The notes beneath the pieces are model-generated. The model was not told the origin of the DNA, searched no databases, and was given only the letters and a program-made list of their open reading frames with translations. 64,000 bases of DNA from Phaeosaccion multiseriatum (Eukaryota > Protista > Ochrophyta, other classes), in assembly GCA_965112735.1 (NCBI GenBank), contig OZ218955.1, positions 2,790,001 to 2,854,000 of the forward strand, written 5' to 3'. Shown in pieces: positions 22,108 to 33,271 of the stretch. The number at the start of each line of letters is the position of its first letter. Position 1 is the first letter of the stretch. Position numbers and translations under genes: made by a program.

Positions 22108-27979
<5,872 letters not shown>

Positions 27980-28914: not shown

Positions 28915-31900
28915 ATGAGGCGTTTGGGGTTGGGGAGGAGGAGTTCAGGGGGGGATACACCCAAAACTGGAACAGGAGGCATAGGGCGGAAGGAGGGCCT
29001 AGAAGTACGACCACCAGAGACACCACGAACAATGCGGGCAAAGTCCAAGAGCTTCAGCCTGGGTAGCAGCATCCACAAAGGTTTCGCCAACCTCAGCAGG
29101 CCCAGCACGCCCCGTGCCCCCCCCCCTGTGCAAAACTGGTGGGAGAGCCTCAGCCGACGCGGAGCTCGGATGGGGAGGAAGGAGGCCTTGGCGGAGGGAG
29201 AGGCCTGCAGGGCGGACGAAAGCGTCGTTACTGCCGCCCAGGTGGAGATAGGTGAGGTGAAGCCCTAACCCGGACCCTAACCCTGACCCTTGCCCCATAC
29301 ACGGACACCCCGAACCCCTACACCCTCATCCTGACACGATTTCTGCCGGGACATGGGTGGGCATCCTTCTAATGAAGTGTACTGTTTGTTACCCATTTCA
29401 ACTTATTCATCCCGTGGCCTTGGAATGGCACTGTGTCTCTCTCTCCCTCCCACCCACCCCCCCTCGGTGCTCCTGTGCTGTACACTCCTCGTCTGCTACA
29501 GTGACTCAATCTTGGCGCCGTCTGAGTACCTGCGGTACCTCCGCCTACCGTGTAGGGAAGACTTCCGGGACCATCGCACCGCGCCAACAAGAGGAGGAGG
29601 CCCTTGCCCTAAGTAAGAACGCCTCAGAAACGAACAACGCGAAGGACACGGAAGAGCGGGGAGGGTTGGACAGGGACCCTGGGATGGCGGAGAGAGGACG
29701 AGAAGCGGGGACAGTCTCAGGCTTTGGGTCCGTAGCTACGGGCGGCTCAGGCTCCTCAGAGGCCTTGAATGGTAGCAGCAGCAGGAGGAGGGGCAGGAGG
29801 AAAAGCAGAAGTAGGAGGAGCAGCAGCAGCAGTACCAGCAGCAGCAGCAGCGCCGGCAGGAGCAGCCGAGCAGCAGCAGCAGCAGTCGCTTTGGCCAAGT
29901 CCAAACAGAGAGCACCGCCACCGGAGATCACAGGTAGGAGAGAGAAGCACAAGAACCGCCCCACACAGACACAGACTGCTACACACAAACCCCCTCTAGA
30001 CGCGTTGGGGGGTAGAGGGGGGGAGGGAAGGGAGGGAGGGGAGGGGGGAGGGCACCTTGGCTTGACTTGGTCACTTGCTTGAGGGTGTGGTGATCCTGCT
30101 CCTGTCGGTGGTGTGCAAGTGCGCATAAGTGGACCCAAGCGGACACAAAGTGGACACAAAGTGGACACTAGTGGATTCACAATTGCTATGGGTTGCGAAG
30201 TTTGTGCAGGGCATGTAACCGTCGGAGAGGATGGGGATTGGTGGATGGGCGTGTAGAGTGGAGTGGCACGGAGCGAGACCGCATAGAGCAAGCGTAGAGC
30301 AAGGGCGCCCTTTGAGTTGGAGTGGGAGTCGGAGGGGGCGTACGAGTGTGAGTGTGCGTTTCAGTGTGCGATTGCGGTGGCCTTGCCAACGCAACTTCTT
30401 TTGGGCCTCTCTCTCTCTCCTTTTTCTTGTTCTTTTTTTTTTAACTTGAAACTCTCTCTCCCTCTGTCCCCCCTCTCTCCATGTCCTTCTTTTTTGTTGA
30501 CTTCACACCTCTCTCCACCGCCATCTCGTCACACCCGCCATCGCGCAGTCAACTCCAACCCCATCCCCAGGCCCCCCCCCGGGTTTGTCAGCAAGCGCCT
30601 CCCGAGTCACTCTCCGATGGCAATCGATGACGACAGCAGCAGTGAGGAGGAGGAGGAGGAGGAGGAGGAGGAGGAGGATGGCGACGGCGCAGGTCCTGAC
30701 AGCACCACCAACAGCAGCACCAGCGACAAGGCGCCCCTTGCCACCCCAAAGGGCAGGGGTGACAAGATTGGCGCTGGCGACTACGCAGATTCCGACAGCT
30801 GCACGCCGCCCATGTCTCCGCCCCTGCCACCACTGCCGCCCCCGACGGGCAAGACACCCTTGGTGAGACCAATCAGGAGATGGCGTCTCACCTCCTTCCT
30901 TTTTTAAATGAACCTTCCTCCTAAGACCTTTGCTTTCTCCCTCCAGCCATTGTGCGTTGTACGGGCCTGGCCTTCAGAGTCTTCTTCTCCCCCCCCCCCC
31001 CCCCATCTCTGCTCTCTCTTCTCTCTCTCTCTGTCGTACTCTCTCTCCCTCTCTGAATCTCTCTGTCGGTGCCCTGCTCTCTCTTTTATCTTTATTTCAT
31101 ACGCTGTGTCCCCCTCTGACTCTCCCTCTCTTTCCCTCCCTCCATTCCCCACCTAAAGGCTTGGTTCTACGAAGTGTTCTTCGCGTACCTGATCCAGCAA
31201 GAGTGGTGGGCTGAAACGGTGAAGGAGAGGCTCAGTCTCAAACAGAAATCCAAATTCCTCGGCCTGCTCGTCGGAAACCTCCTGCGGGTGGAGGTCGTCG
31301 AGCCAAAGGAGGAGGGGGTACTCACAGATGGTGGCGTAGAGTCAAAGGAGGCAGAGGAGGCCGGACAAGAGACGAAGCATGTCCCCATTCCACCTTCATC
31401 CCAACTGTCCCGTGCCTCGGATTCGACGTCATCGCCTTCTCCTGGAGCTGCACCTGTTGGTAGTACGGCTGCTACTGCCGCTGCCAAGAAGACGGCCAAG
31501 GTGGTGTCTCGTGAACTTCAACTTGAAGCTGCGGAGTTCAACTTTTCACTGGGCCTCATGCCGAAGCACTGTGCCGGAGTCAGCAAGGCCATCATGGTGG
31601 GTGGGGTGGGGGTGGGGCCCGATTTTTGTTTGGATCTCCCTCTTACACGTGTTCTTTACTCTCTGTCTGTGTGTATGTCTCCCTCTCTTTCTGTGTGTGT
31701 GCTTCTTTGTTCGATCTCTCTGTGTGTGTGCGTGTGTGTATGTGTAATGCGTGTATGTACACGTTTTTGTGACGTCATAACATTGTGCCACCACAGCTCT
31801 CAGCGCAGTACTGCGTTGGCCCCGAGGAATGGACTCCCGAGGTGTCCCAGGGGTGGAAGGTGGTGACGGAGACTTACGCAACACGGATGGAGCCGCTCGC

Positions 31901-33166
31901 AGAGTTCGTGGTCAGGGAGGTGAGGGAGAGAGGGAGAGCGGAGAGGAGGAGGGGGGGGGGGAGGGAGAGACGGGGAGGTGAGGCAGAGGGAGAGGTGAGA
32001 GGAGGAGGGGGGGGAGAGAGAAAGCGGGGGGGAGAGCAGAGGGCGGAGAGTGAGTGTGAGAGAGAGCGAGATAGAGAGAGAGGGGGGGGGGGGGGGAGAG
32101 CTGAGGATGGAGGGGGGAGGGGGAGAACAGAGGGGAGAGAAAGAGAGAGAAGGAGAAGCTTTCCATCCCTTTCATCCCCCTCCATCCCCCCTCTCCATTC
32201 CATTCCCATCTCACTCTCCTCCCCCCCTTCCCTTCCATCGCAGGCGGAGGAGAAGGTTAGAGTGGACAGCGGCGTGCGGCGGGCGTCGGCACCGGCGCCT
32301 GCGATTCGCACATTATCATCCGAGAGCCACTTCGAACAAGGAGAGGGAGGAGGAGGGGCAACAGGAGGAGCAGGAGGAGGAGGAACGGAAGGAGACAGGA
32401 GCCTGACTATTAGCACGGAGTCGACCCAGGGGGGTGCTGCAGGTGCCTCCTCCAATACGTCGTCTTCCAAGAGCAGTCAAGGGGGCAAGAGCGACAAAAG
32501 CGGATGGCTGCAGCTGGCACAGATGAGCCGGTCGTCCCGCAGGACCACCTCTGCAGTGGTGGGAGAAGAGCAGCAGGGAGACAATGTGTCGCAAACGGGG
32601 TCGACCAAGGGGGCTACGCTGAAGAGCCCGGAGGAGCTCATGGAGTGGTTGAATATGGGCGAGACGCGCGTGAAGGCCTACCGGTGAGTCATTCAGTCAT
32701 TCAGTCATTCAGTCAGTCAGTCAGTCAGTCAGTCATTCAGTCATTCAGTCATTCAGTCATTCAGTCATTCAGTCAGTCTGACAGTCAGCCAGTCAGTCAC
32801 CCTTCCGCCGTTCCCTGCCCTTCTCCTTGGTCTTCGATTGTTTTTTTTTGGTCTCTGTCTTAACTCTCTTACTTACGTACGCGTCTTGTCGTTTCGTTTC
32901 TACACACACCACTCTCGCTGTCGTCCATATGCTGCCATCCATTCATCCATCCACACAGTGTCTTGACCGGTGGTGGGCTGGACGAATCCGCCACCGCCGG
33001 AGAGCGTCGCCAATTGGGAGGCAAAGCGCAAGATTGGAGGGTGCAGCCAATGCGTTTCGGTCCGTTTTCCACCAAAGCGAGCAAGGAAGTGTGGAAGCAG
33101 CGGCAGCAGCAGCGCCGCAGAGGACCACCGGACCTTCCCACCCCGGGGGGGCGGATGTTTGGTTGA
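28915..33166 (+). CDS. Globin-fold protein with long low-complexity inserts, proximal His absent (7 exons)
   Basis: Frame-consistent GT-AG exons 28915-29251, 29502-29933, 30549-30862, 31159-31596, 31797-31919, 32244-32683, 32959-33166. Globin-like helices: A VTAAQVEIVTQSWRRL, B AWFYEVFFAYL, G/H GLMPKHCAGVSKAIMLSAQYCVGPEEWTPEVSQGWKVVTETYATRM. Confidence 0.7.

Positions 33167-33226: not shown

Positions 33227-33271
<45 letters not shown>

Follow-up and report, generated by a model that had tools for sequence, protein, structure and literature searches.

Does the locus at positions 28915-33166 of the window, i.e. of the whole stretch of 64,000 nucleotides from Phaeosaccion multiseriatum analysed here, encode what is left of a globin, taken apart by disordered sequence and no longer able to hold haem? 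The earlier note had proposed this for a seven-exon gene on the + strand, and its exons could be reproduced: all six introns have GT..AG borders, with a pyrimidine tract before most of the acceptors, the phases are compatible, and the frames join into 763 codons whose lone stop is terminal. Exon 1 (28915-29251, +) has 112 codons plus 1 base, consists to 79% of polar or small residues and ends at the donor TAG/GTGAGG (the slash marks the splice border). Exon 2 (29502-29933, +), which begins at the acceptor CTGCTACAG/T after a pyrimidine tract, is 88% polar or small; past its opening motif it is Ser/Arg/Gly/Ala-rich low complexity, including an (AGC)n tandem repeat at 29774-29885. Exon 3 (30549-30862, +; third-position GC 0.80) is acidic, Pro/Ser-rich low complexity with a (GAG)n tract. 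Exons 4 (31159-31596, +) and 5 (31797-31919, +; 41 codons, third-position GC 0.80) are followed by intron 5 (31920-32243, +), made up of 324 nt of purine-rich GA repeats with a long pyrimidine tract before CAG/G; this intron is stop-free and in frame, so that read-through would be an alternative possibility. Exon 6 (32244-32683, +) is Gly/Ser/Thr-rich low complexity with a terminal hydrophobic stretch at residues 124-146, and exon 7 (32959-33166, +) encodes a basic, polar tail that ends in the TGA stop. Apart from the short stretch that closes exon 6, hydrophobic sequence in the protein is confined to its helical blocks, and the DNA encoding those blocks has coding-type periodicity, with a second-position GC of 0.27-0.46 and a third-position GC of 0.65-0.80. 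The open frame itself is no independent evidence for the model, because the splice sites had been picked to preserve it. Long stop-free ORFs run on both strands at this locus, arising from low-complexity repeats, and the only four sequencing runs that contain the locus, all from one sample, are genomic, with contigs that run colinearly through the introns.

As the comparator we used a 15-sequence FHb/SDgb profile of the flavohaemoglobin type, built from 14 plasmid-borne FHb/SDgb genes and compared with single exons by hhalign. PMC1457004 reports that the 3/3 globins of stramenopiles are single-domain globins of an FHb-like kind, which makes this the right comparator. A word search with the globin domain of Hmp had returned near-identical enterobacterial fragments only, so the plasmid-borne genes were used; a second plasmid search added little further diversity.

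All of the motifs previously quoted for this gene are found in the spliced model. The A-helix-like motif VTAAQVEI/V/TQSWRRL is split by intron 1, with VTAAQVEI (29227-29250) closing exon 1 and (V)TQSWRRL (29502-29524) opening exon 2. About 247 low-complexity residues, in agreement with the spacer of about 240 residues that had been described, separate it from the B-like motif TPL/AWFYEVFFAYL, which spans intron 3 such that TPL, at the end of exon 3, directly precedes the B-like helix. The B-, C- and E-like helices occupy the first 43 codons of exon 4 (31159-31287, +; GC at positions 1/2/3 of 0.56/0.30/0.77), where the motif KQKSKFLGLLVGNLL is also present, and AlphaFold, given exon 4 alone, predicts helices at residues 2-13, 15-24 and 27-42. 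Ungapped scoring places FYEVFFA on profile columns 28-34, with the Tyr at 31168-31170 on Tyr29 (B10), and the Gln at 31243-31245 (Gln29 of exon 4) on Gln53 (E7). The resulting spacing from B10 to E7 is 25, against 24 in the profile, which fits the short CD region of FHbs, and the objection that there is no room for a CD region was rejected on this ground. Phe CD1 is absent, as had been said: its profile column, 43, falls on Ala18 of exon 4, just after Trp16 and Trp17.

The tail of exon 4 (31489-31596, +) comprises an F-helix-like segment and the first part of G, with SLGLMPKH following an Asn. The top hhalign match of exon 4 covers profile columns 82-102 and sets this Asn (AAC, 31540-31542) on the invariant His85, agreeing with the earlier placement of Asn at F8, and an invariant proximal His at F8 is a criterion for 3/3 globins (PMC1457004). 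No His is available at F8, the only ones in exon 4 being at residue 74, in the insert that separates E from F, and at residue 137, in PKH, with none in exon 5; His137 coincides with a His that the profile conserves but that is not the ligand. In the AlphaFold model of exon 4 alone the F-like helix stops at residue 130, two past the Asn. The motif EFNFSLGLMPKHC is present too and is followed by the helix of exon 5, an exon that carries the remainder of G, a GH corner (GPEEW) and the H-like helix (TPEVSQGW..., with Trp at 31854-31856). Its top hhalign match covers profile columns 112-125, and AlphaFold on exon 5 alone gives a helix at residues 14-36, pLDDT 72, starting at the TPE motif. Taken together, the single-exon models (pLDDT 52 and 72) contain helices only, and these fall within the segments aligned to B, C, E, F and H. 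The profile alignment matches SLGLMPKH to the FG-G motif and TPEV...W to the GH-H motif, with 7 residues from F8 to the G2 Pro (7 in the profile) and 31 from G2 to the H8 Trp (30 in the profile). A six-frame translation of the window, 113,403 residues in all, contains each of the patterns SLG[ILV]xPxH and TPE[ILV]xxxW, picked post hoc, a single time, in both cases within this gene. Among the haem-related residues, His F8 is replaced in the alignment by Asn, Tyr G5 by Cys, Phe CD1 by Ala and Tyr H12 by Thr. Glu H23 is unaligned; Tyr B10, Gln E7 and the structural residues Val G8, Trp H8 and Ala H16 are kept. Five of the eight invariant columns of the profile are unkept.

How far, then, do these placements rise above chance? 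The best hhalign pieces of exons 4 and 5 have a P of about 0.02-0.03 each, the hhalign pieces overall ranging over 0.02-0.1, and the two matches are contiguous over the splice junction, which falls between profile columns 103 and 104. Their junction-constrained sum of 16.6 bits is the highest of all 49 combinations of exon tail and exon head and was equalled in 29 of 3000 shuffles (P about 0.01), and a colinear chain of exon 4 and exon 5 was equalled in 128 of 2000 (P 0.064), all of these P values being flattered because the locus had been chosen for these very motifs. The B-to-H alignment originally drawn reaches about 9 raw bits in total before gap costs, and its B-E part contributes nothing; the score of the F-H region was equalled by 10 of 2268 background windows of 75 residues. 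Among the hits of a HMMER scan over all six frames of the window, the pieces come 29th and about 319th, and 15 globins searched against it by tblastn gave noise only. Low HMMER scores had been considered as a refutation of a globin, a conclusion that we rejected, since each piece pays the entry cost of a local alignment and the E. coli DosC control fails too. DosC, which carries the annotation of an oxygen-sensing, globin-coupled enzyme, reached P 0.055 with the same profile; a profile that misses this distant control makes negative profile results uninformative. Buried helix positions were mapped by hand through the profile alignment. At the 33 plus 3 such positions that PMC1457004 lists, about 24 of the 36 residues are hydrophobic against about 17 expected from composition, which given the freedom of the alignment is not significant. 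The resemblance of the motifs thus appears weak and not clearly above chance in the tests run. What the earlier note had read from the letters stands as to exons, phases, quoted motifs and the AAC codon, and its globin reading stands as to placement, with the profile putting the Asn on F8, SLGLMPKH on FG-G and TPEV...W on GH-H; the splicing is a predicted one, and the tests of the motifs, at P 0.01-0.06, neither establish the globin reading nor refute it.

Searches of databases returned no relative and no family. Exon by exon, Pfam gave no globin, and exons 4 and 5 matched no family even at E<=10, a negative that is limited by the HMMER filters, which discard most weak matches; exon 6 matched no Pfam family and exon 7 had a match at chance level only (DUF4170, E 0.1). 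No signalling output domain and no RsbR-type or photoglobin Pfam family was found in any exon. With exons 4 and 5, phmmer against PDB sequences found no globin, only chance or low-complexity matches (a WD40 designer repeat and DnaJ2), and protein-language-model look-alikes of the two exons were unrelated clusters below 0.9, without a globin among them. For exon 4, a word search had no match, phmmer against 1.84 billion representatives had two, both within the low-complexity insert region, and a metagenome scan found no relative; the protein itself is absent from that 1.84-billion-protein library. With no relatives from the word, phmmer and metagenome searches, there is no evidence of conservation. 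The divergently transcribed neighbour, previously named as a GGAT and suggested, speculatively, to be co-regulated with this gene, matched aminotransferase class I/II once, below threshold (18.6 bits, cut-off 19.7), and the GGAT identity was not obtained.

It is a serious possibility, somewhat short of even, that the resemblance is fortuitous, and that the locus encodes an orphan, mostly disordered protein with a few amphipathic helices of no globin ancestry, whose motifs were found by looking for them. All the objective statistics are marginal, the pieces do not exceed the six-frame background of the window, the databases searched hold no family, structure or relative, and in a genome of 68 Mb, with roughly 10^5 exon junctions, chance by itself would very often produce a junction at P 0.01. 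Chance would nevertheless have to account for five blocks in the correct order and at near-canonical spacing, for F-G and G-H alignments that meet exactly at a splice junction, the best of the 49 control junctions, and for ordered parts that sum to the length of one globin domain. The residues matched are moreover those of FHb-family motifs (Tyr B10, Gln E7, SLGxxPxH and TPExxxxW), and the negative tests are underpowered, as DosC illustrates.

A second alternative concerns the 67-codon stretch between E and F (31288-31488, +), which could be coding, though disordered, or else a 201-nt intron that keeps the frame and has gone unrecognised. This is a question of gene structure, independent of that of the fold. 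The insert had been put at about 60 residues, and 64-67 residues do separate the E-like and F-like motifs; AlphaFold leaves residues 43-106 of exon 4 without structure. If the stretch were an intron, the core from B to H would be compact and the A helix alone would be set apart by low-complexity exons, an arrangement that we consider possible, if on the doubtful side. The third-position GC of the insert, 0.51 overall and 0.25-0.45 at 31384-31460, is like that of the introns (0.47-0.57 GC), the other exons having 0.66-0.80. There is an in-frame GT..AG pair, CGG/GTGGAG ... GCCAAG/AAG, with a C-rich tract before AAG, which would define an intron of the same length as intron 4 with a donor that resembles that of intron 4, although this donor deviates at +5 from the local GTGAG/GTAGG pattern. 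Removing the insert brings the distance from Gln to Asn to 32, the same as from Gln53 to His85 in the profile, but a spacing of 30-34 is given by 7 of the 23 in-frame GT..AG pairs, and the exact fit is therefore unremarkable. Against an intron, too, is the absence of a stop over 67 codons, the chance likelihood of which is about 0.09 at the local base composition.

That the model describes no functional gene, but instead a decaying pseudogene or a stretch of stop-poor low-complexity sequence through which it was over-extended, would agree with the lack of expression evidence from four purely genomic runs, the repeat-derived ORFs on both strands, the stop-free intron 5 and the failure of the searches to find relatives, but is improbable in view of six GT..AG introns with pyrimidine tracts before most acceptors, a clear coding periodicity in the helix-coding blocks and a model free of frameshifts and internal stops.

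Returning to the globin remnant, we consider a degenerate globin-derived domain in this gene, judged from its sequence, to be very nearly an even prospect. The locus would most likely code for a lineage-specific, largely disordered protein. Its only ordered parts, about 140 residues in a split A-like helix and three blocks (B-C-E, F-G and G-H), would be what remains of a 3-on-3 globin domain of the flavohaemoglobin type (F family). The residues responsible for holding and tuning the haem would be gone from this remnant, and several structural ones retained. If it folds at all, it would do so as a small helical module, free of haem, between long Ser/Glu/Gly/Pro-rich linkers, and by analogy with the non-haem globin sensor domains of bacteria it may act in binding or sensing and not in oxygen carriage. 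The full proposal, that a eukaryote has a 3/3 globin-fold domain without haem, derived from an FHb-like stramenopile globin, with the core kept and every haem-holding residue lost, and serving as a binding or sensing module within a disordered protein, we hold to be rather unlikely; no haem-less eukaryotic 3/3 globin-fold domain was found in the literature searched. If it is true, eukaryotic globins too can lose their haem and be re-used, and the gene would be a natural case of a small fold enduring large disordered insertions. If the resemblance is due to chance, this is an ordinary lineage-specific disordered protein, and a warning against naming a globin on the strength of short globin-like motifs alone. 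Non-haem globin folds as such have already been described, in bacteria (RsbR-type sensors and photoglobin) and in the phycobiliproteins.

Of the known systems, the F-family 3/3 globins (E. coli Hmp, and the single-domain globins of stramenopiles, PMC1457004) have the same block order and length as the blocks here and share with this gene Tyr B10, Gln E7, the SLG-x-x-P-x-H after F and the T-P-E-x(4)-W that opens H. The gene differs from them in its Asn F8, Cys G5 and Thr H12, in having no Phe CD1 and an unaligned Glu H23, in the roughly 247 residues between A and B and the 67 residues (or intron) between E and F, and in not being recognised as a globin by any database search, exon by exon. Androglobin (PMC9249397, PMC11077535), as would be the case here, has a globin domain inside a large chimeric eukaryotic protein, interrupted by foreign sequence. 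Its globin is circularly permuted, stands beside other domains, is conserved across metazoans and is reported to stabilise haem atypically (PMC11077535), whereas the blocks of this gene follow the normal A-to-H order, with no other domain in any exon and no relatives in the databases searched. Globin-like sensors without haem are known from bacteria, namely the N-domain of RsbR, the sensor domain of the Bacillus anthracis sporulation inhibitor and photoglobin, and the phycobiliproteins have non-haem globin folds as well (PMC7475203, PMC8717448). The bacterial sensors are compact, with folds solved or confidently modelled and an output domain attached, whereas the present gene is eukaryotic, lacks an output domain and is known from its sequence; Pfam, exon by exon, gave no sequence relation between them. 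In these sensors the globin fold persists without haem as a sensing or binding module, and they would be the model for the core of this gene if it folds.

Stramenopile 3/3 globins have been reported as single-domain globins close to flavohaemoglobins (PMC1457004). The exons of the candidate gene, modelled on the + strand with GT..AG borders, were aligned with A1, a profile alignment comprising the E. coli Hmp globin domain and 14 plasmid-borne flavohaemoglobin or single-domain globin domains (35-66% identity to Hmp). The top hhalign match of exon 4 (31159-31596) placed columns 82-102 on AEFNFSLGLMPKHCAGVSKAI, with P 0.1 when all of the exon was aligned and 0.022 when only the last 34 residues were, and that of exon 5 (31797-31919) placed columns 112-125 on EEWTPEVSQGWKVV with P 0.032. 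Although found independently, the two matches abut where exons 4 and 5 join: exon 4 ends on column 103 and exon 5 begins on column 104. The AAC at 31540-31542 does encode the Asn that the earlier note had proposed in place of His F8, and hhalign sets it on the invariant His85 of A1; the residues of the E-like and F-like helices include no His. By ungapped scoring, FYEVFFA lies on columns 28-34 with its Tyr on Tyr29 (B10), and Gln29 of exon 4 lies on Gln53 (E7). The spacings in the candidate versus A1 are 25 and 24 from Tyr to Gln, 7 and 7 from Asn to the G2 Pro, and 31 and 30 between the G2 Pro and the H8 Trp; thus the helix register proposed in the earlier note is also the one that an unbiased aligner prefers. 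The short CD region likewise fits flavohaemoglobins. All the motifs quoted in the earlier note are present: TPL ends exon 3 (30549-30862), AWFYEVFFAYL starts exon 4, and the A-like motif is created by splicing of intron 1 between exons 1 (28915-29251) and 2 (29502-29933), with a Val codon divided 1+2 over the junction. The patterns SLG[ILV]xPxH and TPE[ILV]xxxW, composed after the gene was seen, each occur only in the candidate gene among the 113,403 six-frame residues of the window. What is directly observed is confined to how the motifs are laid out and to the lack of a His at the aligned F8 position. We tentatively read the ordered blocks as a remnant of a flavohaemoglobin-like globin domain, a reading to which we give only just less than an even chance.

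A chance resemblance within an orphan disordered protein is a serious alternative, to which we give nearly the same probability as to the globin reading. The statistical support for the globin alignment is not strong. The exon 4 and 5 alignments, when forced to meet at the junction, give 16.6 bits (a sum, as for the chain statistic, of separate exon-wise alignments), a total that 29 of 3000 shuffles and 10 of 2268 background 75-residue windows taken from the same DNA window also reached; the junction is the best of the gene's 49 exon-tail/exon-head combinations, the second scoring 15.3. The score of a free colinear chain of the two exons was reached in 128 of 2000 shuffles, and the B-to-H alignment totals ~9 raw bits with gap costs not yet deducted, its B-E part being net zero. 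When the window was scanned in six frames with HMMER, or searched by tblastn with 15 globins, the locus was not prominent. As a control, the N-terminal domain of E. coli DosC, a protein annotated as a diguanylate cyclase whose N-terminal part we take to be a haem-binding sensor globin, scored 16.9 against A1 (P 0.055), barely exceeding each 14-21-residue candidate piece; the test is therefore underpowered and its negatives do not refute the globin reading, nor do its positives establish it. The database searches were all run on single exons. Pfam gave no family for exons 1, 2, 4, 5 and 6 (32244-32683) and chance-level matches only for exons 3 and 7 (32959-33166); phmmer against all PDB sequences gave no globin for exon 4 or 5, a word search with exon 4 gave no match, and phmmer against 1.84 billion representatives gave two matches, both limited to the low-complexity insert in exon 4. 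A metagenome scan found no relative, and the language-model look-alikes were unrelated proteins. The candidate protein is an orphan across the databases searched, so conservation is unusable as evidence.

AlphaFold, run on single exons without an alignment, predicted helices at residues 2-13, 15-24, 27-42 and 107-130 of exon 4 (mean pLDDT 52), with no structure at residues 43-106, and one helix at residues 14-36 of exon 5 (pLDDT 72). These coincide with the segments aligned as B, C, E, F and H; the F-like helix stops two residues past the Asn, and the TPE motif marks the start of the H-like helix. Over the whole protein, hydrophobic segments are limited to the helix blocks and a single stretch where exon 6 ends, and the blocks with the A-like motif total ~140 residues, which matches a single globin domain in size. 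Predicted helices and block sizes fit a globin but do not identify one.

The segment of 67 codons that separates the E-like block from the F-like one (31288-31488) may itself be an intron missed in the earlier note, which we consider a fair possibility but less likely than not. Its third-position GC is 0.51, falling to 0.25-0.45 around 31384-31460, versus 0.66-0.80 in the other exons and an overall GC of 0.47-0.57 in introns. An in-frame GT..AG pair (CGG/GTGGAG ... GCCAAG/AAG) would excise exactly 201 nt, the length of intron 4, and set the Gln and Asn 32 apart, which is the profile spacing; however, the segment contains no in-frame stop, the candidate donor is an imperfect one, and similar spacing would result from 7 of the 23 in-frame GT..AG pairs available. 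Were it an intron, the B-to-H core would be compact, and the description of helices scattered by inserts would hold for the A helix only.

It is unlikely that the seven-exon model represents no functional gene: the open frame alone is weak evidence, since the junctions had been picked to preserve it and low-complexity repeats yield long stop-free ORFs on both strands, but the model has GT..AG at all introns, compatible phases and 763 codons ending in a single stop, the intron 1 acceptor is the sole AG behind a long pyrimidine tract and hence a natural junction, and GC at codon positions 1/2/3 is of coding type in the putative helix blocks, with 0.56/0.30/0.77 in codons 1-43 of exon 4 and 0.63/0.46/0.80 in exon 5. 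The only public runs with the locus, four from one sample (X1-X4), give contigs continuous through the introns and so represent genomic DNA, uninformative on splicing or expression. Contigs of X4 only carry 1-2-base deletions at 28948 (in a G run of exon 1, where it would shift the frame after the first ATG), 29457, 31939, 32186 and 32221 and three substitutions in exon 7 (33140-33145); these appear to be errors in X4, as X1-X3, from the same sample, match the window. Intron 5 (31920-32243) measures 324 nt, a length divisible by 3, with purine-rich GA repeats and no in-frame stop, and its retention would insert 108 Arg/Gly/Glu-rich residues with the frame kept. Over its GA-rich repeat (31997-32153) and the (AGC)n tract of exon 2 (29774-29885), contig depth in the runs is hundreds-fold in excess and false joints are numerous, which marks both as dispersed low-complexity repeats of this genome. 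An 8-bp microsatellite (AGTCATTC, ~14.6 copies) occupies 32687-32799, three bases past the intron 6 donor, and no run contig among those listed covers 32683-32806; at 33229-33270, 63 nt downstream of the stop codon and presumably in the 3' UTR, is a perfect (CA)21 microsatellite. The divergent minus-strand neighbour upstream (24000-27250), whose introns hold GGATGGAT-type repeats translating as WMDG/HPSI runs in two frames, has one exon that matches aminotransferase class I/II below threshold (18.6 bits, cut-off 19.7); its proposed identity as GGAT is tentative, and co-regulation with the candidate gene is speculation.

If the ordered blocks are indeed a flavohaemoglobin-like remnant, it would no longer have the residues that hold haem, namely His F8, Phe CD1, Tyr G5 and Tyr H12, while retaining the structural Val G8, Trp H8 and Ala H16, together with Tyr B10 and Gln E7. 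With no His in the E-like and F-like helices, such a domain would be unable to ligate haem iron normally, and its role, if any, may be binding or sensing as a module free of haem, tethered by long disordered segments. The candidate can thereby be likened to the bacterial non-haem globin domains, which serve as binding and sensing modules (PMC7475203, PMC8717448); here we infer homology to globins, fold, haem loss and function.
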